Below are positions 25,922-59,068 of a stretch of 64,000 bases of DNA, piece after piece. The DNA is from Oculina patagonica. Lineage: Eukaryota. The translations under genes were made by a program, and so were the position numbers. The notes under the pieces are model-generated. The model was not told the DNA's origin. It did not search any database and saw only the letters and a program-made list of their open reading frames with translations. Where the stretch lies: positions 59,644,001 through 59,708,000 of the forward strand of contig NC_135761.1 in assembly GCF_052425735.1 (NCBI RefSeq). Direction: 5' to 3'. How positions within the stretch are numbered: position 1 is the stretch's first letter; every line of letters begins with the position of its first letter.

Positions 25922-25984
25922 GCAACAGGGATAATTAAATTGTCAACCATAGGAATAGGAAGTGAAAGTTTACATGTGACAATA

Positions 25985-26155
25985 ATGCATTTTCGTATTC
26001 TCGGTATTGGACTGGAACTAGCTTGCAATAGAGGCTAATGCAGGGCAAGATCATAAAAAAGAGCGTCATGTCATTTGCATTTGAAAAGATTACCCGCATT
26101 AGCCTTCATTGCAAGCTAGTTCCAGTGCAATACCGAAAATACGAATATGATCTAT
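25985..26155. mobile_element. Palindromic MITE in ZNF 3' UTR region
   Basis: CGGTATTGGACTGGAACTAGCTTGCAAT..GGCTAATGC mirrored by GCATTAGCC..ATTGCAAGCTAGTTCCAGTGCAATACCG. Confidence 0.75.
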
Positions 26156-35912: not shown

Positions 35913-36360
35913 CCCGGGGGGGGGGGGGGGAGGGTACTCCCATATATGGGCTATATAGGTATGTGCCGCCCGATAGGGTATGGTTTTTGAGGTTCTCGGT
36001 CCTTAAATAGGGTATCATTTTTGGTCCTTTTGGCATTTTGTTCCTCGTGTGATCCTTAGATAGGGTACCAATATTCTATCAGCTTTAATAAACGCCCAGA
36101 TGAACGAAAAAAAGGTATCTTAAAACTGAACTACCCGTTCAAGTATTAGTAAAGTGATTTTATAAAGATTTGTGTTTGGTCGTGCGCGGTTAGCCGTTAT
36201 TTGGGTCGTCATGGAACGCTTCTCCTTCCCTTGAATAGGGTGTCATTTTTCGGTTTGGGGCCTTAAAAAGGGTATCAATTTTCGCTTTCTTTATCCATAA
36301 ATAGGGTAAGGGTTTAAGAACCTTGGCGGCACACTCCAATCCGAAATTTATGGGACAATT
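35913..36360. mobile_element. Non-autonomous element with CCCGGG-poly-G left end, truncated
   Basis: CCCGGGG..GGGTACTCCCATATATGGGCTATATAGGTATGTGCCGC; internal TAAATAGGGTATCA repeats; similar to 23385. Confidence 0.55.
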
Positions 36361-36372
36361 TATGAGAAAATT

Positions 36373-36647
36373 TATGAGAAAAGCCAACGTAGATTTAATA
36401 GTCGCTGCGTTTTTCTCCTTTTAATAATTCAGCTTCAAACTTTTATAAATCCCCTGTCGTTTCCTCGCGGAACTTGGAAAAAGAAATTACAACACCCGAA
36501 GTTCTGAGACAATGTATGAGAAAAGCCAACGTAGATTTAATAGTCGCTGCGTTTTTCTCCTTTTAATAATTCAGCTTCAAACTTTTATAAATCCCCTGTC
36601 GTTTCCTCGCGGAACTTGGAAAAAGAAATTACGACACCCGAAGTTCT
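36373..36647. repeat. 142-bp-period tandem duplication overlapping the GPCR stop codon
   Basis: Two near-identical copies of AAGCCAACGTAGATTTAATAGTCG...AAAGAAATTACRACACCCGAAGTTCT. Confidence 0.9.
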
Positions 36648-37678
36648 TCAGGTCCACCTTGAGTTCTCAAAACCGTATTTGAACGAAAAACACGCATTTC
36701 GACCTCTTCTGCTTGTTCAAGTCGTCTTCGGAACAGCAGATGAACAAATGCAACCCGAAATTGTCTGTTCCTAGCCGCGTAAATCAATGGATTCATGAGT
36801 GAATTTAATAATGTCAAAGCAACAGCAAGGAAGAAAACGATGTATGTAACGTTAACAACCATAGCTTCAATGAAATAAGAAATCGATATTGCAGGAAAGT
36901 ACCACAGAAAAACTGTTATGATAATAATAGTTGTTGTTTTCAACGCTTTCTTTTCTTTCACAAATTTTTGTCTTACCTCGAGTGAAACTTGCTGGGAAGC
37001 GATTTGTTTTTCGTGGCGACGTACCTCGATATAAACAACGATTTGGCATATAACAATTATTGGAACTGTACAAGGTATAATAACATGTTCAAATAAGACC
37101 ATAAGAAATTCAAAATGGATCTCTAGGAAATCCATGATTCCTGGGAATAACGCCAAAATCCAAGTTATCCCAGAAGCGATTATCAAACGTGTAGCTGTGA
37201 TGTGACTGTCGTGGTAAAAAGGATGTTTTACTGCCAAACAACGTTCCAAGCTTATCAACACCAAATGAAACAGCGACACGGCGCAGAACACGTTAAAAAG
37301 GACTCTGGAAATCTTTTCGAATGCACAAACCTCGTTAACGTTCTTTCCTTCAAGGAAGAAAATTGCCATTGCAATATAGGAAGGTTGAACAGTTAAAGCG
37401 ACCATAAAATCAGTCGCTGCTAAGCAAGCGAGCAAAATGTTTGATTTTGTTCGAAGTCGACGCGTAGATTTCACCGCCACAATCACCAACGCATTTAAAA
37501 AAATCGTAAGAGGCAGGGTGAGTAGTGAAACAATTGTTGTGAAAATTAGAACAGTGTAAACCTCGGCCGAAAGTCTACCTGATTTCCAAACAGGCAAAAA
37601 GGCTCCATAACATTTACTATCTGGTTCGTCCTCAAAGAACTGCGATGTTGCAGTAGAATTCATATTCCTTTGGTTCAT
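36629..37678 (-). CDS. Class A GPCR (adenosine/melanocortin-receptor-like orphan), paralogue 1
   Basis: LAATD, ERC (DRY variant), WYFP and NPLIY motifs; single coding exon. Confidence 0.92.
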   Translation of the reverse strand: MNQRNMNSTATSQFFEDEPDSKCYGAFLPVWKSGRLSAEVYTVLIFTTIVSLLTLPLTIFLNALVIVAVKSTRRLRTKSNILLACLAATDFMVALTVQPSYIAMAIFFLEGKNVNEVCAFEKISRVLFNVFCAVSLFHLVLISLERCLAVKHPFYHDSHITATRLIIASGITWILALFPGIMDFLEIHFEFLMVLFEHVIIPCTVPIIVICQIVVYIEVRRHEKQIASQQVSLEVRQKFVKEKKALKTTTIIIITVFLWYFPAISISYFIEAMVVNVTYIVFFLAVALTLLNSLMNPLIYAARNRQFRVAFVHLLFRRRLEQAEEVEMRVFRSNTVLRTQGGPEELRVS

Positions 37679-37834: not shown

Positions 37835-38372
37835 TTTATACGTTTTTAAAATATTTTTTAAGGTCAGTTACAATTTTTTTTTGCCGGATTCGAAAAAAAA
37901 AAAAAAAACATAAACATAATCATATGTAGTATGGTGGCCCATCAGTGCCATAGTATTTTACGCCGGTATTTTAACATTTTTCCCTTTTTTTATATATATT
38001 TTTTATTGTTTTATACTTATTTTATATTTTTTCTCTATTTTTTTTATTCTTTTTCATTTTATTTCTTTTATTTTTATTTTTATTTTTATTTTTTATTTTA
38101 TTTATCTTTTTTTCATTTAATTTTTATTTTATTTTTTATTTTTTTATTCTTTTCCATTTTATTTCTTTTATTTTTATTTTACTTTACTTATCTTTTTTCA
38201 TTTAATTTTAATTTTATTTTTTTAAAAAAATAAAAAAATAAAAACGGCTATGGCCCACAAGTGCCATAGCAAAAAAAGAAAAAAAAAAAAAAAAAAAAAA
38301 AACTCCGTGGCCCAGGAGTGATGCATTGAGAACAGGGAAGGAGTAGTCACCAGGCTTTTGGCCGTAAACAAC

Positions 38373-40755
38373 ATGGCGGCGCGGATAAGAAACGACTCGT
38401 GGAAATATGATGAAGAGCTAAAGCGGGATTTAGAGGAATACGTGAAGCAGATGCTGAAGAGGGACGAGGTTTTGGATTTTGTTTCCAAAAAATATCCAAT
38501 GTATTCCTGGAGTTTGCGTACTCTTTGTCGTCGTTTGCATTACTTTGATATAAAGTACATCGACTATGAAATAGAGCTTGATGATTTGGAAGAATCCGTG
38601 CGCGAAGAATTGAATGGTCCGGGAAAGTTGCTAGGTTATCGTGCAATGACTAAAAAGATAAGAGAAATTCACGGTCAGAAAGTTCCAAGAAACCTGGTCT
38701 ACGCTATGATGGAGCATGTCGATCCCAGTGGCCTTGAAGAACGAGGAGGTATCGGGCAACCAAAGCGAGCCCCAAAGGGTGTTTTTACCTCAAAGGTAAA
38801 CGTAGATTAAGCTTATTTTAAGCCTATTCTAACTACACTTTTAGATGTATTCATGAAACATTGTTTGCACCGACGGACGTGGCATAGTCGAAAATCTGAA
38901 CTGGACTCTGGACTGGACTCTGGACTCTGGACTATTTTTCAAATATTACTTAATATTGACTCTTCACTTCACACTCTTATTTTAGTTATACTGTTGTTAT
39001 ACTTTTATGGTCTTGTTTACAGGGTTCAAACTGGACATTGTCCTTGGATGGACATGACAAGCTTTGTGGCTTTCAAAATTCAACTTTTCCATTGTGTATC
39101 TATGGTGGGCTGGACACATTTAGTGGTAGAATGCAATTTCTTCGCATTTCAACATCTAACAGCAATCCAAAAATTGTTGGTCGATACTATTTAGAGTATC
39201 TATATGAATCAAGAGGTTTGTTCTCCAACTATTTTCCATTTGTTGATAGAGTAAATGTAAAAGATAAAATACTAGCTGAAATTTCATCTTCAAATCTGCC
39301 TTGAAAACTTAAGTTTAAAGACATATGATAGCAAATATCACCTCTTTATCTCCTCTTCTTTCTGTATGTGACATCTTTTTTTGTTGAATTGAAGTGGGAG
39401 GACGTTCATGAGAGAACTTTGTATTCTCATAATCAGCACAAAATTCAAATTTTAAATTTGCTTTAGGAATAAACATAAGGCAGAGTCCACGTTTTTGGTC
39501 TAAGATAATATGCTGCATTCATCTCTGTAAAGAAAAATCACAATCATCAAAGACATTTGGTACATATTAGAGCGTGTAAAATGTTGTTATTGAATTAAAT
39601 GCAATTTTTAGGTCTTCTTCAGTGTCTGATTATTCTTATAAAAACAAACCTTGTGATTGTTAGCTTGACACAATGTTTTGTATCATTTGTTCATGTTTAA
39701 TTTAGTTTTTGTGTTCTCTTATGTTTTGGACATAAGTGCTTCCATCAAGACTACGTGTTGACAAGGGCTCAGAAACAGGGATTATAGCAACCATGCACTC
39801 ATATCTTAGAAGTAAACATAAGGACCTCGACGATCCCACCGACAGTGTACTTTATGGACCTTCTACAGAAAATAGAATAGAGCGTTGGTGGAGAGAGCTC
39901 TTGGATCGAATGGAGAAGTTTTTTTAAAAATCAACTTAATCAGCTCTTGGAGGATGGCAGTTATGAACATGATAATGAACTGCACCGGTTAGTCCTGGAT
40001 TTCTTTTGTTTTCATTTTTTGGAATAGAAAACTGACAAAAACCTTGTCAAAATATAACTGCTTGGAATAATAATTGTGCCAAGGTAGATAGTGATTTTAT
40101 AGTTTAGGGCAACAATTTTTACCTTTGCCACATAACATAAAAGGGGCTGTCTCATGGTTATTTCTTTACTTTTGGCACATTTTTTTACTTGGTTTGGTCA
40201 AACATAAAATACCGTATTACAAACTACAGATGTATACTGTAATAAACTGAAAACAAATTTATAGCAACAGGCCCATTTTCTCATATTTTTGAGACCCAAC
40301 TAAAAGGATTCTTCAATGGTCCTGCTCATAGTGCAAGATTTATTTTTAATTACACCAATAATAGTGAAACAAATGATACTTTTTCTTTCGACAGAGATTT
40401 ACTTGCATTTGTTTACATCCCAGTTATCCAGAAAGAACTTGACCTTTTCAGAGAAACTGTATGGAATTCCCACCGTGGTCGCAAACAAAAATTGAAAGAG
40501 CTTCCAGCTGGAGTGCCAAACCACATTTACAATTTTCCTGAGAATTACGGGGGTGAAAACTGTGGTTTTCCTATCACTGAAGATCAGTTGGAGGAAGTTG
40601 CAGAACTGTCTGAAGTATTGGAGGACACTGATGACTTCTTAGAACCTGAATTTCGAAAGTGTTGTGAAGCAGTTATCTCAAACGTTGACAATATTGAGCC
40701 AGCAGATGCTGCTGATGCATATTTATATCTCAAAGCAAATATAAAGCTAACCTAA
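38373..40755 (+). CDS. DDE transposase / integrase-core protein; exons 38373-38795, 39023-39215, 39737-39987, 40395-40755; one +1 frameshift at T7 39919-39925
   Basis: HTH-like WSLRTLCRRL and LGYRAM; catalytic D in SLDGHDKL, D in LRVDKGSE, E in NRIERWW; WNSHR motif in exon 4; GT-AG introns with compatible phases. Confidence 0.88.
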
Positions 40756-40852
40756 ATGGTTGTAGTGCATGTTTTGCCCAAGGGCTTGTGTTTTCAAGAA
40801 TTGCAAAGAAAAGGCATTTTACTATTATCACTAGTGAAGCCGGAATGGTACT

Positions 40853-43800
40853 TGTAGCCACGAGCGTTCAATTTTTGCATGTTTGCGTGTTTGCGTTGTA
40901 ATTAGTTTGTAATTCCCGTCAGTATTTTTGTTCGGTTTTTGGTTTCTTTGTTAGCGTAGCTCATTATTATGTATTTCTCTGCTAGTTGGTTTCTCGGCCT
41001 AGTATTATGTAATCGTTTATTGTTAATTTTCGTAACTTCGTTAGCGCTATTGTTTGTTTTCAGTCAGTATAAAATCTCGCACGCTTTGCTTGTAAATTAG
41101 TTTTCGTTTTATCCGGTTTGCCGTACAATCTTGTAAGTATTTGTTTTTTCCTTGTATTTTCTCGATTTTGTTCTATTAATGTATTTCGTCTTATAGTTAA
41201 GTTTCAAGTTCTAGTTTATTTATTCTACGTTTTCTTTGTTTTACATGTCCTAGTGAATCGTAAAGTTTATTAAAAGGCGAATTCAAATTGTACAAGGAGT
41301 ATTTGCTACATTCATTCAAAGATTGTGTGGATGGATGCCGTGTGGTCCGGAGATGATGGTCTTGGAACTGAACCTCTAGGAAGACGCCGAGTCCATTCAA
41401 TGGAAGCCCTCGACAGTGTACGTCTCAAGAATTCGAGGGCAGGACATTTGTCCAGAGTAACGGCGCTGTGTCGTGCGACCGAAAATTTGCTTAGTGACGC
41501 GAAAAATGTTGATGGAGTCACGAACAAATTACAAGAAATCAATGAAGCTTTCTCCCGTTTCGAAAGGACCCACTACGACTACATCGCTTCTTTGTCTGGT
41601 GATCTGGAGGTGTGGGAAAGCGAAGCGCGTTATTTTCAGGAACATTACCGCCGAAAGATGAATTTTGTTTCGCGAATCGAGCAATGGATTCATCGCGCAA
41701 GATCATCCCCTGAGGTACGCGAAGTCAGTGAACCAAATCCGGAGGATTCCGTAAGTACTGCGAGTTCTTCGCAAAGTTCATATCTATCTATCAGACAGCT
41801 AAGGGCCAAGCAGGCATTGGCGCATTTAAAGTTGTACCAGTTGAAAAAGAAACAAGAATTGTTGCGTCGGGAAGAAGATACGAAATTGAAAATGGAGGTT
41901 CTCGATGCGCAGTGTGAAATCCGAAAAGTGGAACTTCAAGTAAACATGCTACAGGATGAGGGGCCGCCCGCTCAAGATGACTTGTCTAGCGTTTTTGAGG
42001 ATCTGAATCCGTTCAACGAACGTGTTGATGCCAGAGCTAGAAATGTACCGAAGCAGGAACATTTTGAACATCGAAACGATCAAACAACTGGTCCTCAAGA
42101 CGCCCCATTGCGATTCAATCCAAAAGCGCGGGAATTTGCAAGTTTGCCACCTGCTTCAACTGCAGCCTTTACTGGTTTAGGACCAACTGGTTCTATTATG
42201 ACTGGACAAATTATGGACAAGATGGCATTAACAATTAAGCAAGGATTTGCGTTGCCAAAAAAGGAGTTGAAGACGTTCGATGGTGATCCTCTCAATTACT
42301 GGAACTTTATTAAATCGTTTGAGAACAGTATCGTAAACAATGCAGCCAGTGAAAGTGACAAACTTATGTATCTTCTTCAGTACACATCTGGTGTAGCAAA
42401 TGACACGATCAAGTGCTGTTTAGTCATGGATTCTTCCCTGGGCTATCAAAGGGCAAGAGAACTGCTTGAAGAGCGATTTGGACACCCCTTCACAATTGCC
42501 TCGAAATACGTAACCAAGTTAACGGAAGGACCCCCGTTAAAGCCATTGGATCGCAAAGGATTGTTGGCATTTGCTGACCAGTTGAAAGATTGCGAACATA
42601 CACTAGAATCGATTGGATATCTGGATGAAATTAACAGCGCAGACAATCTGAGGAGAATTGTTCAGAGACTGCCGTTCCATCTCCGTACCAAGTTTATTGA
42701 AGTTGCGGACCAAATTCAGCAAGCTGGTCAGAGGACAAATATCAGTCACATTGCAGAGTTTGTCAAGGTTAAGGCGAGGGCCGCGAACAATCCTGTGTTT
42801 GGTTGCGTGGTAGACGTTGCGAGCCAGAGTGAAAGATCGGAAAATCAGAGGCGTAAACCAAAGTTTAAGAGCCCCACTTTACCTGACGAACGTGCCAGCA
42901 CATTCAATACACAAGAGACTGAATCCGGTGACAGACACAGTTTGCCTTCCAACAGAGTGATCCCAGCCATCAGATTTGCGAAATGTCAGGCGTGCAAAGG
43001 TGACCATCACTTAGTGAAATGCAAGAATTTCAAAGACAAAAACTTCGAAGAACGTCTTCAAGTGATGAAGAGAGCTCAGTTATGCCACAACTGCTTCAAG
43101 TATGGTCATATTGCAGTAGGATGCTTAGCAAAGAGTGCATGTGAAGTTCAAGGTTGCCGAAGAAGACACCATACTTTGCTCCACCCTCCGCCCTCCGCCT
43201 TCGCCCCCACGCCTCCGCCTTCACAGCAAACGATCGAAAGTAGAGAAAGAGCAGCAGAACAAGGAGCTCAAGTAGCCGGTAGCACTCCATTACAAAGTGG
43301 TCAGGCCAACAGTACTTCAGCAGGTGGAGGAAAGGTGTGCCTGAGAGTAGTTCCTGTAAAGGTGCGAGGACCTGATGACGCAAGCAAGACGGTGAACACT
43401 TACGCCCTTCTTGACAGTGGTTCAGACATTTCCTTGTGTGACAAGAATCTAGCAGTCGAACTCGGAGTACATGGAACCCAGAAGACGTTCTATTTAACAA
43501 CTCAAGAGAGAGAAGATAGCCCAAGAGTTGGTCTTGAAATCAGCCTAACCGTAGAGGCACTTGACGGAGCAGATAAAGTAGACGTTAAGAGACTGTGGAC
43601 TGTTGATAAATTGAATGCTTCAAGTCACAGTATTCCGTCACAAGATGATGCAAAACAGTGGCCTCACTTAAGAGACATCAAGCTGCCAAGTATTTGTGAG
43701 AAAGAAGTCGGGCTGATTATAGGCACCAACGCTCCTGACGCATTCTGGGTGCTAGAGGAAAGACGCGGTAACAGAGGAGAGCCGTATGCCATTCGTACAC

Positions 43801-46800
43801 CACTTGGCTGGACTCTCATGGGCCCCATGGAGAAGAGCGATAGCCATAACTGTCATCTGAATGTTAATTTTGTTCGCTCAGCGGAAGTTGAGAGAAAGGA
43901 TGATGATTGTCTCATGCAACAGCTTGAAAGGTTCTGGGCAGTAGAGAACTTTGGAGTGGTCCCTAACTGCAAAGCCAGTATGTCAGTGGAGGACAAGAGA
44001 ACCCTTGCAATCATGGAACAGTCAGTGAAACTTGAAGATGGGCATTATCAAGTGGCGCTTCCCTGGCGACAGTACCCACCATTCTTGCCTTTCAATCGAT
44101 CTATGGCAGAACGCAGGCTGCAAATGCTGAAGAAAAGGTTGCAGCAAGATGGCGAGCTCTTTGAAAATTACAAGGCCACCATGGAACAGTACCTTACCAA
44201 GGGTCACGGGAAAAGAGTGCCATTGGACGAAGTCCACACACGAGATAAGCCACTATGGTACTTGCCTCATCATCCCGTAATGAACAAGCCTGGAAAAACT
44301 CGCGTGGTTTTCGATTGTGCAGCTAAATACAAGGGAACGTCTTTGAACGATCAGCTCCTCACTGGACCAGATTTGACAAATTCTGTTGTCGGTGTGCTAA
44401 CACGGTTTCGTGAAGAACAAGTTGCGTTATCCGCTGATATCGAGTGTATGTTTCATCAGATAAGAGTTGCACCAGCTGACCAAGACGCCTTCAGATTCCT
44501 CTGGTGGCCGGATGGCGATCTGACCCAAGATCCAGTTGATCATCGCATGGAAGTCCACCTATTCGGTGCAACATCTTCACCAAGTTGTTCCAACTTTGCT
44601 TTAAGGAAAACAGCGGAGGACAACCAGGGCGAATTCTCAGAGGAAGTTGTTAAGACTGTCAGGAGGAACTTTTACGTCGATGACTGCCTGAAATCAGTTA
44701 AATCTGCTGAGAATGCTGTCGAATTGGTGCACCAGCTTCGAGATATCCTGTCCAAAGGCGGTTTTCGACTCACAAAGTGGTCCAGCAACTCATCAGAAGT
44801 CCTTAAGACCATTCCGCAAGTAGAGAGAGCCAAGTCAGTGTTAGACCTTGACTTAGACAAGGGAAAACTGCCGATTCAGCGTACCCTTGGGCTACACTGG
44901 GACATGGCGAGTGACAAGTTTTGGTTCAATGTGGATCTAAAAGATAAACCGAACACCCGTAGAGGTATACTGTCCGTGGTGAGCTCCGTGTATGACCCGC
45001 TTGGATTCGTTGCGCCAATCATCGTGCCTGCAAAGAAATTGCTGCAAGATCTTTGCAAACAGAAACTTGGATGGGACGACCCCATCAGTGAAATTGACGG
45101 AGAAAGATGGGAGAAGTGGAAGAGTCAGTTGGCAAGTCTTTCTCAGATTACAGTGGACAGATGCGTTAAACCAGCCAGCCTTGGAGACTTGAAGGTCGCG
45201 GAGCTACACAACTTTGCAGATGCGTCACAAATTGCATATGGAGCAGTCTCGTATCTCAGATTGGTAGATATCGAGGATAGAATCCACTGTACATTTCTCA
45301 TTGGAAAGTCGCGCCTTGCCCATTTGAAACCAATGACGGTGCCAAGACTAGAACTGTCAGCGGCAGTGTTAGCTGTCCAGCTAGACCAGACTGTCAGAGA
45401 AGAGCTGGACATCCCAATTTACCAATCGACATTTTGGTCTGACTCCACCTGTGTGATACAGTACATCAGAAACCAGTCTAAGCGTTTCCATACATTTGTT
45501 GCCAACAGACTATCAGTAATCCATGAGAATTCAGCACCTCATCAGTGGAGACATGTTAGTTCTGAACTCAACCCGGCGGATGAAGTCAGCAGAGGACTTA
45601 CAGTAGAAGAAATGAGTACAACCAGCAAGTGGCTGAATGGTCCCGAGTTTCTGAAGAAGAATGAAGAGTTTTGGCCTCCTGATCGTTCAATCTGCCAACC
45701 AGAAATACGAGAAGATGATCCAGAAATTAAGCGTGAAAACCAGTCCCACAGTCAGTCATTGACTCATCATCCAGGCAAAGAAGTTCTGTCCAGTTTGATG
45801 AAACGCTTCTCATCGTGGGAAAGATTGAGAAGAGCTGTTGCTTGGCTGTTGAGGTTCAAAACGTGGTTCATGGCGAAATACAGCCGTAGTCCAACTGACA
45901 CCAAAGCTCAGAGCAATCAAGAAAGAGGACCCCTCCTGTCCGTGAATGAAGTTCAGGGAGCTGAAAGAGAAATTATCAAGCATGTTCAAAGGTGTTCATT
46001 TCCAGACGTTATTCAAGCCATGCACAGAACCAGTTCATTGAAGTCTTCACGTCAACTAACCTCCCAGTTAAAGAACCTGAAGATACCAGCCCATATGTGC
46101 AAACTTCACCCGCAGTTGGACGACAGTGGAATCCTTAGAGTTGGAGGACGTCTTGAAAACGCTCTAATCGACTACAATGCTAAACATCCGATTATCCTGC
46201 CGTATCGTCACCAAGTTACAGATTTGATCATCTCTGAGCATCATCAGAAAACTGGCCACCTGGGTCAAGAGTACGTACTATCCAGTTTGCGTCAACTATA
46301 CTGGATAATAAAGGGGCGTTCAGCTGTGCGTCGAGTAATTTGTAGCTGTTTCCCGTGTAAGAGACGTGGTGCAGTACGTGGAGAGCAGCTGATGGCCGAC
46401 CTTCCGAAAGAAAGACTGATGTCAGGAGATCCACCGTTCACCTATGTAGGCGTAGATTATTTTGGACCCCTTTATGTGCGTCAAGGTCGCTCGAATGTGA
46501 AACGTTATGGGTGCCTGTTCACTTGCCTCGTCACCAGAGCAGTCCATATCGAGGTTGTACACTCACTTGATACCGACAGTTTCATTAATGCAGTGCGAAG
46601 ATTTACCAATCTAAGAGGAAGTCCGTCAACCATTTACAGCGACAATGGAACAAATTTCCATGCAGGAGAGAGAGAGCTACGAGAGTCGTTGAGAGATTGG
46701 AATCAGCAATCAATCCAAAAGTCCCTTCGTCAGAAAAATATCAGATGGAAGTTTAACCCGCCTGGCGCTTCGCACATGGGTGGTGCCTGGGAACGTACGA

Positions 46801-47934
46801 TAAGGTCCGTTCGTAAGATCCTGAGGGCCTTGCTAGGCCAACAGCTTGTCTCTGACGAAATTCTGAGAACCTTGATGAGCGAAGTTCAAGGGATCTTAAA
46901 CAGCAGACCGTTGACCCCAGTCAGTAGCGACCCAAAGGACTTGGAGCCTATTACTCCAAACCACCTGTTGCTGTTAAGAGCCAACCCAAATTTGCCTCCC
47001 GGTGTCTTCACCAACGAAGAAAATTACAGCAAGCGACGATGGCGTCAAGTCCAATATATGTCTGACATATTCTGGAAGCGCTGGTTAAGAGAATACTTGC
47101 CAACCCTACAAGAGAGAGCTAAGTGGATCAAACCTCGCCGTTGCTTGGCGATCGGAGACCTGGTATTGATTGCAGATGAAAATGTTCACCGCGGAAAATG
47201 GCCGTTGGGCAGAGTGATCGAAGTTTTCTATGGCAAGGACGGATATGTCAGATCAGCAAAGGTTCAAACGAGTTCAACGATTCTCACAAGACCAGTGACG
47301 AAACTTTGCTTCCTGGAAGGCGAGAAAGCAATTTGATTAAAGTAACTGAACTTTCCTTCAAACAAACGGAAACTACATGAACACTAAGGATATTCAAGGA
47401 GAACTTAACACTCGTGTCTTAAAATAGTGAAGCTGTTAATGAACTGTTAGACTTAAGTAGTTCATTGGGGCCGGCGTGTAGCCACGAGCGTTCAATTTTT
47501 GCATGTTTGCGTGTTTGCGTTGTAATTAGTTTGTAATTCCCGTCAGTATTTTTGTTCGGTTTTTGGTTTCTTTGTTAGCGTAGCTCATTATTATGTATTT
47601 CTCTGCTAGTTGGTTTCTCGGCCTAGTATTATGTAATCGTTTATTGTTAATTTTCGTAACTTCGTTAGCGCTATTGTTTGTTTTCAGTCAGTATAAAATC
47701 TCGCACGCTTTGCTTGTAAATTAGTTTTCGTTTTATCCGGTTTGCCGTACAATCTTGTAAGTATTTGTTTTTTCCTTGTATTTTCTCGATTTTGTTCTAT
47801 TAATGTATTTCGTCTTATAGTTAAGTTTCAAGTTCTAGTTTATTTATTCTACGTTTTCTTTGTTTTACATGTCCTAGTGAATCGTAAAGTTTATTAAAAG
47901 GCGAATTCAAATTGTACAAGGAGTATTTGCTACA
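40853..47934 (+). mobile_element. Full-length BEL/Pao LTR retrotransposon
   Basis: 458-bp TG..CA LTRs (40853-41310, 47477-47934) with no mismatch seen by eye; 5-bp TSD GTACT; GGGGCCGGCG PPT-like tract before the 3' LTR. Confidence 0.97.
41325..47336 (+). CDS. BEL/Pao gag-pol polyprotein (~2000 aa; real ATG probably 41331 or 41400)
   Basis: FDGDPLNY gag, three Cys/His knuckles, protease LLDSGS, RT YVDD, RNase H HNFADAS, integrase GVDYFGP/SDNGTNF/WER; uninterrupted. Confidence 0.96.
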
Positions 47935-48718
47935 GTACTAGTGGTCCAGTTATTCATGATTGAAGATAACAAATATATGTACACCTAGATGGAACTAACT
48001 CACATGTATTGTACAACTGTATCCTGCAACATGACAAAAAACATACATTTATTGTACTCTGTGAACAGAACTTTCGAAGAACAGTGATATTGCCTTAAAG
48101 TAGCAGCAACAAAAAAAAATTCAACTTACAAAGGTTTCTAAGTCTCGTACACTTATGTAAAACACACGTATACGTTTACACGTATGTAAAATAACCACAA
48201 GATAGCTGAATCCTTTACAATGATGTATATTCAACTATAAATTATACAACTGAATCACAATTGCCCAAATTCTTAACAGCAGAATGGCAAGTAAACACAA
48301 TATGACCTTAATATTTGAACAAATCAACATTGAACTTCTTAACTTTTCACTTATCAGTGGCCATCTCAGAGAAAGGGGGGAGGGGGATGGTGGGGAACCA
48401 CCAGGAAGACTTTCTCAAGTATATTTCTTGAATGTTTATGATGGGATGGATCTTTTATTTTTTTAAATGGTAGTGGTAACAACTCCTGTGGGTCTTTCCA
48501 TGTATAATAGCCTGATACAAAAGTGCACAAGTAATCCAATCAAGTATGTACCCAGAGTCAACCAGCCCCAAACCCACATCTAGGTATAGCCACTGCTAAG
48601 TGCACAAGAAAATTGAAAAGGAATCCTAACTTTAACTTTTAAAAATATTCAGATCCCATGCTACCCTCCTCCACCAACCTCACATGTCAAATAATTACAC
48701 CTAAGCAATGACAAAAAC

Positions 48719-49210
48719 CACAGGGAACCCGAACGCTGTATTGGCAAAGTTAATAATGAAAATAAAGATATGTTTGTTACCTGTGCTCCTGTGTCTTTCT
48801 TTGTCCTTAAAATGGTTGTGCTCTTGTGTCTTTCTTTGTCCTTAAAATGGTATTTGAATCGGTGCGAAAACGGTTTGAGCAAGCCTTGTCTGACGCTCCG
48901 TAAATAACGACGCAGTTAACACGTCTCGTATTTCCATTCATGTTATTAACTATTTCTTTCCATATTAACCATTAACACTCCTGGCAAAGTTAATAATGAA
49001 AATAAAGATATGTTTGTTACCTGTGCTCCTGTGTCTTTCTTTGTCCTTAAAATGGTTGTGCTCTTGTGTCTTTCTTTGTCCTTAAAATGGTATTTGAATC
49101 GGTGCGAAAACGGTTTGAGCAAGCCTTGTCTGACGCTCCGTAAATAACGACGCAGTTAACACGTCTCGTATTTCCATTCATGTTATTAACTATTAATTCT
49201 CAACGGGAGA

Positions 49211-49246
<36 letters not shown>

Positions 49247-49540
49247 CGTTAAATTGAAATACGAGATTATCTCCCCAGGAGTGTTAATGGTTAATATGGA
49301 AAGAAATAGTTAATAACATGAATGGAAATACGAGACGTGTTAACTGCGTCGTTATTTACGGAGCGTCAGACAAGGCTTGCTCAAACCGTTTTCGCACCGA
49401 TTCAAATACCATTTTAAGGACAAAGAAAGACACAAGAGCACAACCATTTTAAGGACAAAGAAAGACACAGGAGCACAGGTAACAAACATATCTTTATTTT
49501 CATATTTAACTTTGCCAATACAGCGTTCGGGTTCCCTGTG
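48719..49540. mobile_element. P-superfamily-like foldback MITE with internal 240-bp duplication and central (GA)n
   Basis: CACAGGGAACCCGAACGCTGTATTGGCAAAGTTA termini (CA..TG); 7-bp TSD CAAAAAC (48712-48718, 49541-49547). Confidence 0.82.
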
Positions 49541-51027
49541 CAAAAACCAAACCCTAACGGTCTTTCTATTGTATGGCTGGCAGCATGCAGGCTAAATAAA
49601 ACTAGTTCTAGCAAAACTGCAGGACATTGGCCAAGTTAAGGGGTTGTCATGAGTCACAACTGGTTTAGGGCGACAGGAATTACATGTAGGTGATACTGAG
49701 GAAATTTTCAACATTTAAGGTGGCTACTGACAGTTTAGAGTCCTCACTGTGTACCACTCCGCATAATCACTGATATGTGATACCAGTCCAAAGATCATAA
49801 CGCTAGCTAGCGCTTAACAGGTTACCATGGCAATGAGAAAACCATTTAAAAACAATCTTTGTTTACACTCTAGGGCTCATAACTCAAAAACTTCTGCAAA
49901 GTTTTATTGACTATTTAAATTTTAGGCAGCACAATCTAAACTTTGCAGAAAATTTAATTGTGGCATGCTAATGAATGATTTGCCACTAGTCGGATCCTGT
50001 GTTTTGCGTGGAGGATTCTGGGATCGCTAGGGGGCAAACATTGCAAGTCGCTAGAAGAAGATGTATGGCGAAAAGTTGTTTTGACGCTCAAAAATACGAT
50101 TTTGGAGGGAGATCAAGGCTTTTTCACCAGTATTTTATCAGAAATGGATTTGGGCAATGTTGGTACGTTGAAAGTGTTAGGTTTTGTTTGAATAGCCGTA
50201 AGATATGCGATAAAATCTACCGCTTTTATGAAGGTTTACATGTATTGTGAAATCGACATCGCGTATTAAACTGGGGTCTCGAAATATTATAAAATTGGAA
50301 ATAGCTCAATAAAGCCCTTCCAGTAGATATTTAACGTTTGCACAAGCTGTAAATTTATTAGTCACGTCTTTTATAAACAAATAATTATTATGGCTTCGTA
50401 ATATTAAAGGTGACAGACATTCACAGACTCCTACGATCGTGACTTGTAAATTTCCCAATCGCTTTTGGATTTGGTCGTTTATTAAATCTATTTTGTTTAT
50501 TACTAGTTTATAACGGGAACTATATTCTGTCAGCTGTATTATTAAGAAGTGTTTTAAGCTGAGTAGAGCCCTATCAATGCCGCCAGCAAATGTGTAGAGG
50601 TCGAAGGTCTGCGTTAAGTTCCACGGTAGTACACTTTTACACCTCTGCACTGTATAATTTATTGTTTATATATGAACTTTATGTATTGGCTATTGGAACT
50701 GTTGTGATTTATCTTGGCTCATTTATATTTGCAAGATGTGCTTTAAATTCGTTCTGAAAGGACAAGATCTTAAATTTTCCTTGAAGATGTTGATTAGTAC
50801 AGTGTTGCGTAAATGTGTTGCTTCGTATCGCGGATGACATGTTTATTTTTATTTTGTTTAGCCAGAGGCTGCTTAGCTTTACTTCGAGAAAGATATAACC
50901 TTGTTTTAGAGCCGGCCATGCTCATGACAAATCATCTTTTTTATTTTTGGGCGGGTAGAGTCTTAATATTCCATCGCGAGGAAGAATCTTTTGCCTCTCT
51001 GGGTACCTTCGATAGTTATCACGAATT

Positions 51028-51178
51028 GCAGTCACATCGTTCCAAGGTTACTTCGTTCCAAGTCACATCGTTCCAACTTTTGGTCAGATCGTTCCAAAAA
51101 AAAGTCACTTCGTTCCAACTAAAAGTTACTTCGTTCCAACTAATAGTTACTTCGTTCCATCGAAAAGTCAGATCGTTA
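51028..51178. repeat. Short tandem array of GTYACWTCGTTCCA units
   Basis: Seven to eight copies at 15-22 bp spacing. Confidence 0.85.
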
Positions 51179-52067
51179 TATTAATTTAATAAAGAGAATG
51201 TTTATAAGAAAACATTATCGAAAACATTACTACTCGATGTTGTTAAATTTTGTAATGCATGCGCTCTACCGTTCGTTACGAGCAATACGGTTTTTATTAC
51301 GTCTTAGTTTGCAGTTGTACCTTCCAAATTAATTTGTATGCCTTTACCTGTTTAGAATTCCTTGCGTAGTTTTTTTCTATCAATTGCTTAACACCAAGTT
51401 TATCGAATATTTTCGGTGTCTGTTACGTTATGCGTCGGTGTGATTGAGAAGAAAAGTTCGCCATGTTGAATTGTTTTTGAATCCAGTTCCCTACCGCGTA
51501 TAACGAAAAGTAAAGAAGGGAAGAGAGGGGTGGGGGAGACTTTGGTTATGTTAATGCATCAGTCAATTGAAACCCCGGCCCCCCGACCCCCGGGACTTAC
51601 CGGGGAATTTAACATTTACCAAGTGATAAAACCCGGCTTATTTCCCCGCCCTAGGGGCCTAGACGTCTGTTAAAAGCCCCGCATAGAGGGGGCATCCGAA
51701 TCGACTTTCAGGAAAAAAAAACGGACAAAAATCTTGATTTCGTTGCAGTAACTAACAGGTTTTTAAGAGAGATGCTCAGTGTGGTCTTTCAAGAAAGCTC
51801 GTTCTAATTCAATGGAAAAGATTCTCTTTTACTGATAAGCACATCAAACAGCCATGGGCACGACAATCGCGCAGTTTCTGCTGTCATGTCAAGGCCAAAA
51901 TAGAAAACAAAATAGAAGAAGGCTATCCTTTGGAAACGATTTATTGTCGACGTCTTTTAAACTCATGTGGGACACAAGAAGAGACAAAATAGAAGAATTT
52001 CATCTTAAGGTAAACAGCTTTCACCCTACGATATAATTCACGGCTGAAATCTCAGAAACAGAAGCTA

Positions 52068-53089
52068 CATCAAAGACACCACTCATTTTATAAACTTCGT
52101 TGAAAACACTCCACTTCCAGACAACGCGGTTCTAGTTACTCTAGACGTTTGCTCCCTCTACACTAACATTCCTCAAGAGGAAGGAATAAGTGTTGTTTGT
52201 CAATATTATGAAGAGCATTATCAGTCGAAACCACCGATCCCAACATCATTCTTGGGAGACCTCATGAGACTGATCCTAAAAGAAAACTCTTTTAAATTCA
52301 ACGACAAACATTATTTGCAAACGCACGGAATCGCTATGGGCACCAAAATGGCCGTAGCCTTCGCAGTCATTTTTATGGCTCACATCGAAAAACAGCTACT
52401 CCTAGCCAGCCCACACAAGCCTATACTCTGGAAAAGATTTATCGATGACATATTTTCAGTGTGGACTTTATCCGAGCGAGAAATCAGCGACTTTGTCGAC
52501 TTCGCTAATTTATTCCACGCCACTATCAAATTCACGCATGAAATGTCATCAGAAAAAAATTGTTTTCCTTGACACTGAAGTTTTCAAAGGACCGCGATTC
52601 ACTGACAGCAAAACTCTGGATGTTCAAACTCATTTCAAGCCTACAGAAACTTTCCAATATACGCACTTCTCTTCGTGTCACCCTTTCAGTGTTAAAAAGG
52701 GTTTTATCAAAGGAGAGGCCTTGCGTTTACTGAGAACAAACTCGGTTAAAGAAATTTTCGAGTTACGAAAACTAGAATTTCTGACTCGATTACTCGAGCG
52801 AGGTTACCCTCGGGAACTCGCCGAGAAAATCTTAGCCGAAGTAGACTTCTCAACACGATCTGAGGCGTTACTAAACAAAACTGCAACATCCAACAATGTT
52901 TTGCCTTTTGTCACTACTTTCAACCCGACTGCTCCGAATCTTAAAAAGATTCTAATGAAACACTGGCATCTCATAACTGAGAACAACAAACTCGCTCAAA
53001 CATTTTCTAAACCTCCAATTGTCGCTTATCGGAAGGACAAGTCTCTGAAAGACATTTTAGTCAGAGCAAAAATTCCTTCCCAGATTTAA
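52068..53089 (+). pseudogene. Penelope-like element reverse transcriptase, 5'-truncated, one frameshift at A7 52553-52559, no GIY-YIG
   Basis: IKDTTHF, LDVCSLYTNIP, QTHGIAMGTKMA, RFIDDIF, FLDTEV, KPT..QYTHFSSCHP; ends LKDILVRAKIPSQI*. Confidence 0.88.
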
Positions 53090-53804
53090 CAACAACATTT
53101 AGGAGTTATATACGGTAAGGGTCGAGTGACAATATTATAAAACATACCGCACAATGATGACAGTGATCGCTACCGGCTGGGCATACAAAATTATTTGTAT
53201 AACTTAGCATAGAAATAATCCTGTACACACGTAAATACAACCCAAAAGGCTTTATTAAGTAATTTCCTCCCGATATATACCTAACTTGTAATATTTCGAG
53301 ACCATTTTGAGATGTCAATTTCAAAATAAACCTTACGAAAGCAAGGAGACCAAGGAGGTTTAGGTTTATCGGTAAACTTGATCACATATTTTCACGGTTA
53401 TTCAAACAAAAACTTGCACTTTTGAGTATCAACAATGCCCAAATCCATTCCTGATAAAATACTCGCGAAAAAGCGTTGATCTCTCTCCAAAATCGTATTT
53501 TTGAGCGTCAAAACAACTTTTCGCCATACATTTTCTTCTAGCGACTTGCAATGTTTGCCCCCTAGCGATCCCAGAATCCTCCACGCAAAACACAGGATCC
53601 GATTAGTGGCAAATCATTCATTGTTCTCCAAGAATATATTAGGGGTCACCAATGTTGTTTTTTTTCTTTTGAGTTGCATGTATGAATTCCTATGGCCAAA
53701 ATGACATGCTTAAATGGTTCTCTAATTTCTATGGCAACCGAATAGGTCTTTCAAATGATGTTATATTTAAGGCAGACAAAAAGCATCGGGTTCCATCTTT
53801 GTAC

Positions 53805-55152
53805 TTAATCTGAAATTTGAAGGAGGTTGCAGTACTTATTGCATTTGTGGTCTGCTAAAAAGTTCGCAATGGCGTCCGTAGATAAATTCCCAGAACAGAA
53901 CAGAATGGAGTTGTCAGTGGCGTCAGTCAAGCTGGCACTTGCTATTTCTGGATCACAGAGGTCATAGTCAATGCCTTGTATATCTAAAACCATCAGTTGT
54001 TTGCTTGACTTAACGTAGGTAAAGTGAACGAACGCTTCAGCTTTGGAGATGATCTCGCTACTGCCGGCATAACTGCATCTTTTGAAAAGTGCCATCCAGG
54101 AAGTTTTCGACGGTAACGAATTCGCCGTTCAACACTGAATAATACACTTTTGTATAGGTAAAGCTTTTACCAAATTCTAAAGCGGGCTTATCCGTCTCCA
54201 TGATTTGGGCGAAATTACGTGCGAGCGCATTCATCTGAACAGCTTTCCTGTTGTGTGCCTCCGTAGAAACAAACAACTTTTCAATATCAGCGATTCGATC
54301 TTCTCTATACTTTTTCAGCACATATTTCCCAGGAGGTAGGCCAGACATCGAAGTCGCTATGTAGGCGTCACGGAAGCCGCCACTCGCAAAAGAACTCTTA
54401 TCCAAAGATAAGGTGACCTCGATAGGTTGTTGCCATTCTCGCTTTGAAATGGAAAACTCTTCCAAGTGCAACTTTACCACCTCGAATTTTGGCAGGATCA
54501 ACCGCCCCAACTTCAACATTTGACTAAGCGGAACAGAGGTCGCAACAGTACATGCTGCTTTCAGTTGGCTGGCCTTCTGCGGGCTAGCCGGGGAGCTATT
54601 CGCAACTACTCGAGTGCTTCGGCCAGGGAGGATAACTGAACTTCGATCCATGCCAGTGTTTACATTCTCAATGAAGCGAATGTGGACCAGTTTCCAATTT
54701 TTTATCTGTGAAGCGTCCGTATACGAAGGACCGCGTTCCCCCGCAAGCAAGTCAGGAAAGATTTCCGCACAGCCCCCTACATTAATTATGTATGCAACTG
54801 TTTCATACTATCACTATACACAAGCAGCAATCATGAAAAGAACGAATCAGTCAGAATATTGTATGCATAATTAATGTAGGGGGCTGTGCGGAAATCTTGC
54901 CGCAAGTCACATTCCATTTGCGTACCGAAATGCGCTTTACAGGCATCTTTGATGTTTTCTAATGTTGGTTCTTTTTTCCAGAGGAACCATAGTTAGAGGG
55001 CCAATTCTCGAATACTTTTGGCATTTACCCTCGACACTTGACGATAGCCTTTGCACAGTGATGTAATCAGTCGGCATGCCATCCTCTCGTTTGCCCATTC
55101 GTTTCTTCGAAGTCTTTTCTTTGAAGTCCGCCCATTTCCTTTTCCCAGACAT
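53805..55152 (-). pseudogene. Alpha-kinase (eEF2K/MHCK/ALPK family), intronless, ~400 aa when repaired; disrupted
   Basis: FASGGFRDAY (Gly loop), YVLKKY (catalytic Lys), VENFL, AEAFVHFTY, LMVLDIQG, LCDPEI, GNL and HKCNKYC zinc site. Lesions: +1 at 54972-54977, MITE 54755-54901, frameshifting deletion at ~54080. Confidence 0.9.
54755..54901. mobile_element. 147-bp MITE (GG..CC termini, 8-bp TSD; Merlin-like) inserted in the alpha-kinase CDS
   Basis: TIR GGMAAGATTTCCGCACAGCCCC(C)TACATTAATTATG; TSD GCAAGTCA at 54747-54754 and 54902-54909. Confidence 0.88.
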
Positions 55153-56156
55153 ACTCAGCAGTTTTATAAGATGTGTTTCAGGTCTGGTCAAGGGAAACAA
55201 GCACAAAAAGAGCGGGACGTAAATGAACGGTCGCGAGCGTGCGTTTAACAGAGAGCCTGGTGACTACTCCTTCCCTGTTCTCAATGCATCATGGGCTATG
55301 GCACTCCTGGGCCACGGAGTTTTTTTTTTTTTTTTTTTTTTTTTGCTATGGCACTTGTGGGCCATAGCCGTTTTTTATTTTTTATTTTTTTAAAAAAAAT
55401 AAAATAAAAATTAAATGAAAAAAGATAAGTAAAGTAAAATAAAAATAAAAGAAATAAACTGGAAAAGAATAAAAAAAAATAGAAAAATAAAATAAAAATT
55501 AAATGAAAAAAGATAAATAAAATAAAAATAAAAATAAAAGAAATAAAATGAAAAAGAATAAAAAAATAGAGAAAAAATATAAAATAAGTATAAAACAATA
55601 AAAAATATATCTAAAAAAAGGAAAAAATGTTAAAATACAGCGTAAAATACTATGGCACTGATGGGCCACCATACATATGTAATTGGGTCATTAGCGTGCT
55701 TAAAACTCGCGTATGATAAACAATTTCGAAAATTTCAGATTTAAAGACATCCTGCGAGCAGACTCCCTTTTAACTTTCCTGCGGCTGAAATTTATTTTCA
55801 AGCATATCAGTGAAAAATAAAATGGCTCTGCTCGCAGGGTGAATAAAAGATCGAACTTTAAAATGTTTTTCTCGATTTTGAGCGTTTGTAAGATGTTTTT
55901 ATTGAAAGCTCCAAAAAGAGCTAAGATTTAGTAACTAATTTTACAGCTTAAAAGGGGTTTAAAATGGTTTCAAACTCGGAGCGCAAATAAAATTTAAAAG
56001 CGTGAAATATTTCGTCTGATATCGACTTCAACAGTCAATGAGGTGGTGTTTTTTTAGATGAATGTTAAGAAGACATTTTAATGTCTCGGGGGAGTTAAAA
56101 TTCTGTCATAAATTGGAGCTCATTCAAAACCATTGTCTCTATTTAACAAAGGTTTT

Positions 56157-56427
56157 CTGAGTTTTATCTCAATGGCCTCTTTTACCCGGCGTTTAAAGGT
56201 GTTGATTTCGGTGGCTAACACAGTGCAACAAGGAGTACGTTGGCGAAACGTCTCGTTTACTGGAAACCAGAATGAAAGAACATCAGTCGAGAAACTCGTC
56301 AGTCATTCATGAGCATTGTCGACTGGAGGGCCACTCGGTAGACACAAGCAAGACAAAAGTGTTAGCCATCGAAATCAACACCTTTAAACGCCGGGTAAAA
56401 GAGGCCATTGAGATAAAACTCAGATAA
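56157..56427 (+). mobile_element. Penelope GIY-YIG endonuclease fragment with inverted 5' duplication
   Basis: 56221-56427 translates QCNKEYVGETSRLLETRMKEH..IHEHC..KVLAIEINTFKRRVKEAIEIKLR*; its last ~65 bp are inverted at 56157-56221. Confidence 0.82.
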
Positions 56428-56649
56428 GTTCGCCTGTTAAAGATCATTTCGACGAATTACTACTCGATTTGTTCCCAGGAAACCAATTTCCGAGAATATA
56501 ATGTAAGTATTGCAAATTGCTTTTGACAGCTGTTTGTATTAGCCAAACATAGAGGTTTTGTTCTTGATTACTCCGTGTCGCTACTTTTTCTGTAACTCAC
56601 TTTCCTATTTGCATCGTTTTAAATTCCATTTCCGCTTCTCTGTGTTTAA

Positions 56650-57205
56650 GAGCCTGTTTATATGAAAAAGAGTTGTCCCTGGTAGGAGGGTTACCCTCTC
56701 CCCCGAGCCAACTTTGGCCGAGCGTTTATATGAGAAAGTTGTCCCTGTTGACCGAGCCAAAACTTGGCCCTCTCGGTTCAAAAGACTGGCGAGAGTTGTT
56801 TTGAAACATCTATTATGGCTGCTTTTTCTAAAATCAGGAACGCTGAAACTTCGACCAAGACCACATTTTGGACAAAACTACCACCGACTTCGATTTCAAT
56901 TTATCTGCAACTTTGTTTTGGCTGATTGTAGCGTTTGCGCATGCTCCGTATGTGTCAACTTGTCCCTGGTAGGCGAGGCAAAAATAACCAAACTGTTTAT
57001 ATGGAAAAAAGTTGGCTCGCTCCCCAGGGTCACCCTCCCTTCAAAGCGAGTGACCCTCCACCTCCTAGCCAACTTTACAATTTCTCATGTAAACGGTTCA
57101 CAGCTATTTATAAAGAAGCGTATGAAAAGCTCTCTCGCCTGGGGTGGCTCTGTATGGAGGGTAACCCTCCTACCAGGGACAACTCTCCTCCATATAAACA
57201 GGCCC
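56650..57205. mobile_element. PIF/Harbinger-type MITE
   Basis: TAA|GAGCCTGTTTATATG..GAGTTGTCCCTGGTAGGAGGGTTACCCTC ... GAGGGTAACCCTCCTACCAGGGACAACTC..CATATAAACAGGCCC|TAA. Confidence 0.85.
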
Positions 57206-59068
57206 TAAGAAATACCAACTGAGTTCTCTAATATTAGTCATAATTTTAATTATTTTTTTCTTTGTTCGTGAGCGGGCGGTATTCTACAAATCCTGCGATC
57301 TAATTGGTTCCGGGAGCGGGGGGCGGTATTCTCCAATCCGGCCCGCTCACAGCGGGCGGTATCCGTTGCGAGATGAATCGTCGAGTGTGTTTTCCGCGCG
57401 AAATTATTTTGCAGCGTTGTACGAACGGTTGTGGTTGTTTGTCTTGTTTGTACATTTCGCAATTATTTTAACGCCATTGCGGTAAGCTGCACCGGGTTTT
57501 AACTTTAATTTTGAGTAACAACTGCCTTTTATCGGCCACTTTTTTGCCAAAACAAAACACTAGTTGACATCATTGAAGAAAATGAGGTTCTTTAATTAAA
57601 AACAGTCAAAATAATTCTCGCAATATTTCTCGCAAACTACGCATTTCATTCAGTTTCACTTTCGCACTGTTCTTTACAAAGAAATTCTGCTGGGAATCAA
57701 CGCAGAGTTTATTAATACGTTAAAAACAATTATGTTAAGCTGTACCGAAACTGTGTTTCAGGAGATAATATTTTTTAGTCCGAGAATTACTATCCTACGA
57801 ACACAATTCCTTTCAAAAAATTCATCGGGAAGCCGAAATCGATTTAAAAGTGTTCAGTTTTGTCAATGATATAAATGCTTTGCCTCGATTTTAAATAACA
57901 AACAGGCAGCATTTTTATTACAATCTTTCTAATCCGTCGATCGACACAACATTAAAATGACGCGCGTATACATACAAAGATTTTTTGAAAAAATCTTCCA
58001 AGGTTTCTTTTAAAAAATGTGCCCTCGGTCTTGGAACCGCCGTTGGCCTGCGGCTTTGGGCGGTATCCAAGACCTCGCGCGGGCACAGTTTTTCCCAATA
58101 CGGACCGACCAAGGCTGGAGAATAACCAATATGTCTGATTATTATATGGCTATAATAGTACGCGCGCTCTGATTGGCTGCTGAGCGGGCATATTTCTGTA
58201 TGACCGGGAATGGGAATTTCTCGGCTCGACGGTTGAGTGTGAGTAAAAGCACAGCGAGGGGGAAAAACAACAAAAAATGCCGACAAATTAACATCTTTCA
58301 ATACAGTAACTGAAAGAAAAAAAGCATACCGAACTTCTAGTATGAGCGACGAGAGAGCCACAGAGAGCGAGAGCGAGTTTACCTCCAGTGTCTGATATAC
58401 TCTGAATAGTGCAAGGCCTTTATCATACCCGCCCGCGGGGATCCGACCTCGACCTGATGAGCCCGCTGCGCCGGCAATACCAAGGCCGGGAGATCCCCGT
58501 GCCTCACCTCGGTTAATAAGTAGTATTTACTTTAAAAACTAGATTCCACAAGCAATTTTTATGAGACCATTTCTATTTGCTCGTGTAGATGAGGAAATGG
58601 CATTTTTTTGTGACAAATATATTCGCTGAGAAACAGGCGTGTTTGCTTTAATGGGTCTTTAATGTGACAAATAAAAGTGGTCTTAAACAAAACATTTTTT
58701 CGTGTAGACAACTTATCACATAAAATGTGACAAATCTAAATTTGCGTCAGCATATGTGGTCCCCAATCTCCTACTGGGTACTGTGCGCGCGTATCTCTGT
58801 GCGTATCTCAGCTGTCTAAGGTCATTACTGGAGCACTTAACTTTGGACTGCATAAAAATCATCACATGAAAAATAGAATTCGCTCCTCTAAACGCGGCTT
58901 AAAAGACTGAGAAAACTCGTTATCTATCTTTATCTTCCAAATTCTAATTTGAAGGTCTATGTTAACAGATGGCCGCTCTTTAATCTGTACCAAGTTGATT
59001 TTGGTACGGACATGGATCTTGACATCTTGTCTAGCCTCTACAACCTCTTGTCTAGCCTCTACGTAAGG

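Follow-up and report, generated by a model that had tools for sequence, protein, structure and literature searches.

A stretch of 64,000 nt from the genome of Oculina patagonica (NCBI RefSeq assembly GCF_052425735.1, contig NC_135761.1, positions 59,644,001 to 59,708,000 of the forward strand; hereafter the window) very probably contains, between positions 37929 and 55674, a decayed cut-and-paste DNA transposon of the IS3EU/GingerRoot superfamily, which was later entered by four other mobile elements and whose alpha-kinase gene is the regular second gene of the superfamily. An initial annotation of this DNA had described a transposon with terminal inverted repeats (TIRs) of ~430 bp, a flanking direct repeat, a spliced IS3/IS481-like transposase of the DDE (Asp, Asp, Glu) type and an alpha-kinase facing it, and had proposed that the element is IS3EU-like and the kinase a dedicated gene of it. 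This account was borne out by the analysis presented here. The same annotation knew of no described transposon family with an alpha-kinase, and held that a family already annotated with this cargo would count against its proposal; PMC12730594 (Kojima 2025) reports exactly this layout, a transposase and an alpha-kinase gene in opposite orientations, for fungal IS3EU families, so the claim of novelty fails. The layout is on record only as a passing remark; our literature searches found no paper analysing the IS3EU kinase, and full-text searches turned up no other paper linking alpha-kinases to transposons. New with respect to PMC12730594 are the pairing of both genes across animal phyla, their co-divergence, the purifying selection, the probable beta-grasp domain of the kinase, and the transcription and splicing of the element. 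The Oculina family is probably not yet catalogued.

Structure of the window copy

The features of the element itself are the following.

37922-37928, no strand: left flanking direct repeat ATATGTA, read from the sequence, same as 55675-55681
37929-38356, plus strand: left TIR, terminus (G)TATGGTGGCCCATCAGTGCCATAG, three GGCC..GTGCCATAG-like boxes with T-rich tracts between them
38373-38795, plus strand: transposase exon 1, N-terminal helix-turn-helix (HTH)-like region (translation; RNA joint; 47-61% identical to exon 1 of related loci)
39023-39215, plus strand: transposase exon 2, first catalytic Asp (SLDGHDKL) (translation, RNA joints, conservation in relatives)
39737-39987, plus strand: transposase exon 3, second Asp (RVDKGSET) and Glu (NRIERWW) (Pfam rva_4, 4.7e-5)
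40395-40755, plus strand: transposase exon 4, ending at the stop codon (Pfam, RNA joint, relatives)
53805-55152, minus strand: alpha-kinase gene, a pseudogene in this copy (open reading frames (ORFs), Pfam, comparison with intact relatives)
55254-55674, minus strand: right TIR
55675-55681, no strand: right flanking direct repeat ATATGTA, read from the sequence

The TIRs are ~425 bp long. When aligned with gaps, 37929-38356 and the reverse complement of 55254-55674 agree at 398 positions and differ at 7, and the 39 gap columns all fall within T/A-rich low-complexity tracts. The identity of 71-89% returned by ungapped repeat finding is too low, since the gapped alignment has just these seven substitutions. 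Exactly two exact copies of the 24-nt terminus TATGGTGGCCCATCAGTGCCATAG are present in the window, one per element end, with none expected. The termini TATGGTGG..CCACCATA, at 37930 and 55673 inside the TIRs, are of the TA..TA (TAYGG..CCRTA) type of the superfamily, and the 7-bp repeat ATATGTA directly adjoins GTATGG..CCATAC. Once the four nested inserts are subtracted, ~6.2 kb is left, close to the ~6 kb first proposed; intact relatives measure 4.9-6.5 kb. The intergenic spacer, ~1.49 kb with the inserts removed, is the same in an intact relative, the second O. patagonica locus L001 described below (1,492 bp).

The ATG of the transposase gene (38373) lies 17 bp inward of the left TIR, and its four exons are separated by three GT..AG introns. 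The Pfam family rva_4 ("integrase core") matches exons 3 and 4, the D, D and E motifs are all present in the window and conserved among relatives, and the transposases of these relatives bear precomputed PF24764 and the IS3-type HTH_21 (PF13276). As in the superfamily, the product is a DDD/E transposase with an IS3/IS481-like integrase core and without an N-terminal HHCC zinc domain. The frame of exon 3 is shifted by one extra T in a T-run near 39919-39925; because all four sequencing runs, including the DNA one, show one T fewer at 39919, this shift is either private to the window copy or a homopolymer assembly error.

The kinase gene is intronless and convergent to the transposase, with its ATG at 55152 on the minus strand, 101 bp inward of the right TIR. 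From the N-terminus on, it encodes a basic tail, a probable ubiquitin-like domain, a linker and an alpha-kinase domain. It is more heavily damaged than the transposase, carrying a 1-nt frame shift in an A-run near 54972-54977, a 147-bp miniature inverted-repeat transposable element (MITE; 54755-54901) within the N-terminal domain, and a short deletion near 54080 by which the conserved K-Y-x-N-N-x-G stretch was lost and the frame shifted. Pfam Alpha_kinase (PF02816; cut-off 21.3 bits) is matched by the C-terminal piece with 74.4 bits (1.6e-20) and by the N-terminal piece with 22.3 bits, the score of the intact relative P0023 being 120 bits, and the residues that survive match the conserved catalytic set given below. 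The annotated 280-aa kinase fragment (P0001) is 100% identical to the NCBI "hypothetical protein ACROYT_G017194" from CM126638.1 (64.4 Mb) of assembly GCA_052425735.1. The window copy is dead, with both genes broken; the initial annotation was right that the two genes are there, and had left their intactness unstated.

The same gene pair at related loci

Related loci were collected in both search directions, seven by the kinase alone (L001-L007) and three by the transposase alone (L008, L010 and L011). The former correspond to a second O. patagonica locus (L001), two ENA assemblies (L002 and L007), Acropora digitifera (L003), Exaiptasia (L004), Saccoglossus kowalevskii (L005) and Pycnogonum litorale (L006). 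The query for the latter was a 169-aa single-ORF piece from Saccoglossus, whose matches were fragments without taxon names, with plant and fish members left out. The same convergent transposase and alpha-kinase pair was found at 10/10 informative loci: all seven fetched with the kinase have transposase exons immediately downstream, in convergent orientation, and the three fetched with the transposase, which are those with enough flank, have an Alpha_kinase gene 2-3 kb downstream, again convergent. The pair is thus present across Cnidaria, Hemichordata and Arthropoda, and kinase homologues (kinase sequences only) occur also in tunicates.

Six of these loci contain complete elements with TATGGTGGCC termini, TIRs that are 94-99% complementary, and 6-bp target-site duplications (TSDs) that differ per copy.

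L001: CTACTC
L002: GATTTG
L005: GAGGAG
L007: GTACAG
L008: GTGGTC/CTGGTC (5/6 matching)
L010: AACATG

As the TSDs and the hosts differ and the divergence amounts to 40-60%, these loci are not segmental duplicates of a single one. L001, a 6.5-kb element on the same chromosome record as the window copy (CM126638.1), encodes an intact 403-aa kinase and a 411-aa rva_4 protein; these are 57% (kinase) and 62% (transposase) identical to those of the window, so that L001 represents a second family in the Oculina genome.

Pairwise distances of kinase and transposase among eight elements are tightly correlated (Mantel r = 0.97, p = 2e-4). The two Oculina families resemble each other less than L001 of Oculina resembles L004 of Exaiptasia (67% and 77% identity for kinase and transposase, respectively), which indicates that distances follow element lineages and not host phylogeny. 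Between L002 and L003 the ratio of nonsynonymous to synonymous substitution rates (dN/dS) was 0.14 for the kinase (dS 0.55), within the range of that of the transposase (0.12 for exon 3 and 0.25 for exon 4), from which the kinase is judged to be under purifying selection. These comparisons strongly support the kinase as a gene of the element and not a chance neighbour, in agreement with the dedicated role first proposed for it.

Some observations were made on the ends and on single loci. The TIRs of different families (window 37929-38356, L001 9551-9924, L005 9166-9751) have a common outer box, TATGGTGGCC(Y)A..G(C/T)GCCA, which is almost identical between coral and acorn-worm elements, and a box like GGCC..GTGCCATAG recurs near the inner TIR end across families, whereas the spacer between boxes is family-specific and of low complexity. 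These boxes are likely transposase-binding sites. In Pycnogonum (L006), the kinase and the transposase remnant lie between 1.2-kb inverted repeats (12820-14022 and 24756-25994; 98-100% identical) that are not IS3EU ends, as they start with CAAGGTG and have no evident TSD; they may represent a larger element or an inverted duplication. The Saccoglossus transposase core (L005 16064-16570) is 65-79% identical to hundreds of proteins from ENA and Logan contigs, an unusually high conservation that could reflect slow evolution or horizontal spread among marine animals.

Domains and distribution of the kinase

An alignment of 32 full-length relatives (A1; 367-463 aa) showed 90-100% conservation of the catalytic set K229, D344-x-Q346-G347, D354-P355-E356 and N376, as well as of the zinc ligands H330, H389, C391 and C395, and a conserved N-terminal block (ITVQRLS...CDVLAGERGPS...HVRF). 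By these residues, the kinase of intact members, of ~400 aa, is predicted to be catalytically complete. The AlphaFold2 model of the intact kinase P0023 (predicted local distance difference test, pLDDT, 85) runs from a Lys/Arg-rich N-terminal helix through a beta-beta-alpha-beta-beta domain (residues 37-118) and a disordered linker to the alpha-kinase domain. Its best Foldseek match in the PDB was TRPM7 ChaK (1IA9; 1.3e-19, template modelling (TM) score 0.73 by target), followed by MHCK-A, eEF2K and ALPK1. Modelled alone, the N-terminal domain reached a pLDDT of 93 and matched exclusively beta-grasp folds of the ubiquitin-like (UBL), PB1 and RA (Ras-association) classes, with a TM score of ~0.5; as the Foldseek E-values are weak (0.02-0.1), this fold class is probable but not proven. 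No Pfam family was matched by the kinase N-terminus, either in the window pieces or in P0023. The N-terminal region of the kinase carries a probable, conserved ubiquitin-like (beta-grasp) domain, new here and seen only by structure modelling.

The kinase family comprises 543 clusters at 50% identity (E<=1e-3), with named members from Acropora, Exaiptasia, Paramuricea, Actinostola, Clytia, Ciona, Saccoglossus, Pycnogonum and the EukProt source GoldUCD, which we take to be the Aurelia genome project. At 90% identity, the largest clusters number 96 sequences for the kinase and 134 for the transposase. An alpha-kinase cluster from Basidiomycota equals the cnidarian one in its ESM Atlas score (0.98); this is a lead only, consistent with the fungal IS3EU kinases. 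The initial annotation had also suggested that such elements swell the number of intronless alpha-kinases, and NCBI indeed names IS3EU kinase genes "myosin heavy chain kinase A/B/D-like" or "TRPM6-like" (L001, L003, L005, P0006, P0008 from Acropora muricata, P0023, P0119 and P0146). Host alpha-kinase counts are in this way inflated in corals, acorn worm, Ciona and other invertebrates by misnamed transposon genes.

Expression of the element

RNA contigs from three runs contain the GT..AG joints 38793>39021, 39213>39735 and 39986>40394 of the transposase. A DNA run with that organism label lacks these joints, and depth is high over the exons and near zero over the introns. Ten RNA runs, belonging to three studies, contain a share of 0.60-0.70 of the words of the kinase sequence. 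Some RNA contigs, 3.4-3.6 kb long, start in exon 4, cross 40852 and continue directly into the sequence beyond the BEL insert described below; contigs plausibly extend toward the convergent kinase. Because the assemblies are unstranded and the run type was guessed, this evidence is good for splicing and weaker for transcription of the kinase.

Two further features of the transposase region were noticed. In one RNA run (X9), A>G clusters at partial depth occur at 38877-38979, 39028-39030, 39549-39551 and 40433-40452; neither the DNA run with the same organism label nor two further RNA runs show them. They look like ADAR-type A-to-I hyper-editing of a transposon transcript in double-stranded form, such as convergent transcription could yield, with strain variation as an alternative. 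Intron 1 harbors a (CTGGACT)n-like microsatellite (38880-38935), whose motif is highly repeated genome-wide, as the assembler word depth of a DNA run climbs there from ~190 to 3,300-5,900.

Nested insertions and flanking sequence

The four inserts subtracted above are all nested as first described.

40853-47934, plus strand: BEL/Pao long terminal repeat (LTR) retrotransposon, LTRs 40853-41310 and 47477-47934, TSD GTACT
48719-49540, no strand: foldback MITE, 266-nt arms with 99% complementarity, flanks CAAAAAC
49970-53622, no strand: non-autonomous TIR element of 3.65 kb, 253-nt TIRs
54755-54901, no strand: 147-bp MITE in the region coding for the ubiquitin-like domain of the kinase, 43-nt TIRs, 8-bp TSD GCAAGTCA

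The BEL/Pao insertion is very young: alignment of its LTRs gave 458/458 identical nt, and its ORF (41325-47336; 2003 aa) is intact, with Pfam Peptidase_A17, RVT_1, Integrase_H2C2 and DUF5641. RNA and DNA contigs of other samples pass from 40852 straight to 47940, so copies or alleles without BEL exist. The ORFs of the 49970-53622 element have no Pfam match. Just outside the transposon are a 142-nt tandem duplication, a 349-aa minus-strand ORF and two short inverted-repeat (MITE-like) structures, in the regions 36357-36640, 36629-37678 (minus strand), 56153-56427 and 56649-57206.

Assignment of the element and proposed role of the kinase

Several points weigh against the assignment of the window copy and of its kinase to the regular IS3EU plan. 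The flanking repeat of the window copy measures 7 bp, against 6 bp in its relatives, and its ends are extended by a G; with the termini placed at TATGG, as in related elements, its 6-bp flanks mismatch. The IS3EU identity was assigned from termini, TSDs, gene layout and Pfam rva_4/HTH_21, and not from alignment with a Repbase/Dfam consensus. Among the related loci, L006 has a transposase remnant only, TAYGG termini were not found at L004 and L006, and the ends of L003 and L004 are incomplete (Ns or truncation), those of L003 being N runs. The RNA evidence consists of assembled contigs from runs labelled "RNA?", with an organism label (B) that differs from the source sample. Finally, the kinase may not be universal or essential, as the GingerRoot paper, which deals with plant members, mentions none. 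Even with these points counted, the assignment given at the outset is the one we hold with high confidence.

Autonomous members consist of two convergent genes between long TIRs ending in TATGG..CCATA, the kinase having very probably been inherited vertically with the transposase inside the element lineage and not captured from the host at the window locus. Its Lys/Arg-rich N-terminus suggests a nuclear enzyme, which may be needed for efficient transposition or for its control, and which would most likely dock through the beta-grasp domain. Its predicted target is either the transposase or transpososome itself, or else a factor of chromatin or repair acting where the element inserts or excises. 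Among these functional options we prefer direct phosphorylation of the transposase or transpososome with beta-grasp docking, a predicted substrate to which we give an even chance. The further proposal that IS3EU transposition depends on the element's own UBL-domain alpha-kinase, as an obligatory cofactor or regulator kept from fungi to deuterostomes, is tentative, and we would put it at somewhat better than one chance in three. If true, IS3EU would be the first DDE transposon superfamily with mobility dependent on its own protein kinase, and a sizeable share of the annotated "alpha-kinases" of cnidarians and other invertebrates would be transposon genes. Why a transposon should have kept a kinase over hundreds of millions of years is a tractable question.

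The main alternative, which we consider less likely than not, is that the kinase is an element gene that acts on the host, as a counter-silencing or host-manipulating effector directed at chromatin, PIWI-interacting RNA or RNA interference pathways, or DNA-damage signalling, or through eEF2K-like damping of translation. The TET/JBP dioxygenases acquired by some IS3EU families are interpreted as anti-silencing cargo (PMC12730594), a predicted protein-docking beta-grasp domain next to a basic tail resembling a nuclear localization signal would suit such an effector, and the A>G clusters suggest double-stranded transcripts of the kind seen by host pathways. However, no substrate supports this role, for the pair to persist from fungi to deuterostomes the host target would have to be very conserved, and the tight co-divergence with the transposase is explained equally well or better by the direct partnership preferred here.

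Two readings in which the kinase would not be a regular transposon gene were rejected, since the pair recurs and its copies are multiple, with distinct TSDs. It is very improbable that a host alpha-kinase was picked up once by the window copy, or came to lie between its TIRs by chance: alpha-kinases are normally host genes, and NCBI labels the relatives as myosin heavy chain kinase-like or TRPM6-like, but the convergent pair is the same in 10/10 related loci of several phyla, its two proteins co-diverge (r = 0.97), and the layout was already stated for fungal IS3EU. Equally improbable is a domesticated two-gene host locus, no longer a transposon, with incidental TIR-like repeats. Intact ORFs, purifying selection and transcription are compatible with host genes too, but a single genome contains several divergent families (the window copy and L001, both on CM126638.1), 90%-identity clusters reach the sizes given above, TSDs vary from copy to copy, the nested BEL is present in some copies and absent from others across samples, and the window copy itself is decaying.

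Comparison with known systems

Repbase has listed IS3EU as a superfamily since 2012-13; its ends are of the TA..TA type, its TSDs are 6 bp long, and it belongs to one lineage with GingerRoot (PMC10045372). Its described members encode only two proteins (PMC8232023), and its hosts on record are acorn worm, Hydra, coral and fungi. The Oculina family resembles it in the TAYGG..CCRTA termini, the 6-bp TSDs of its relatives, TIRs of tens to hundreds of bp, an IS3-like DDD/E transposase without HHCC domain, and a two-gene organization with the alpha-kinase opposite to the transposase. The window copy departs from the norm in its 7-bp flanking repeat, its G-extended ends and its being dead, and it has no TET/JBP gene, in contrast to the fungal IS3EU families for which a kinase was noted.

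GingerRoot, from Selaginella lepidophylla (Cerbin et al. 2019, PMC6839031), shares the 6-bp TSD, TA..TA ends and long TIRs, and its transposase lineage is that of IS3EU with 99% bootstrap (PMC10045372). The same paper (PMC6839031) reports related coral elements with similar termini; in contrast to the elements analysed here, it describes no second gene, and a kinase is nowhere mentioned in it. Styx/REP9 of Zymoseptoria (PMC8232023, PMC10853768) is also IS3EU-derived and has extra genes beside the transposase, which shows stable carriage of accessory genes in the superfamily. It differs in having four genes, two of them genus-specific, with no alpha-kinase reported in these two papers.

The canonical alpha-kinases (TRPM7 ChaK 1IA9, Dictyostelium MHCK-A 3LKM, eEF2K and ALPK1) have the same fold as the IS3EU kinase (Foldseek E 1e-19 to 1e-10), and the same catalytic Lys, DxQG, DPE, GN-loop and His/Cys zinc module. 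Unlike them, the IS3EU kinase has no channel, WD40, calmodulin-binding, SEL1 or ALPK1 N-terminal domain; it has instead a short basic tail and a predicted beta-grasp domain, and is encoded by a transposon in multiple copies.

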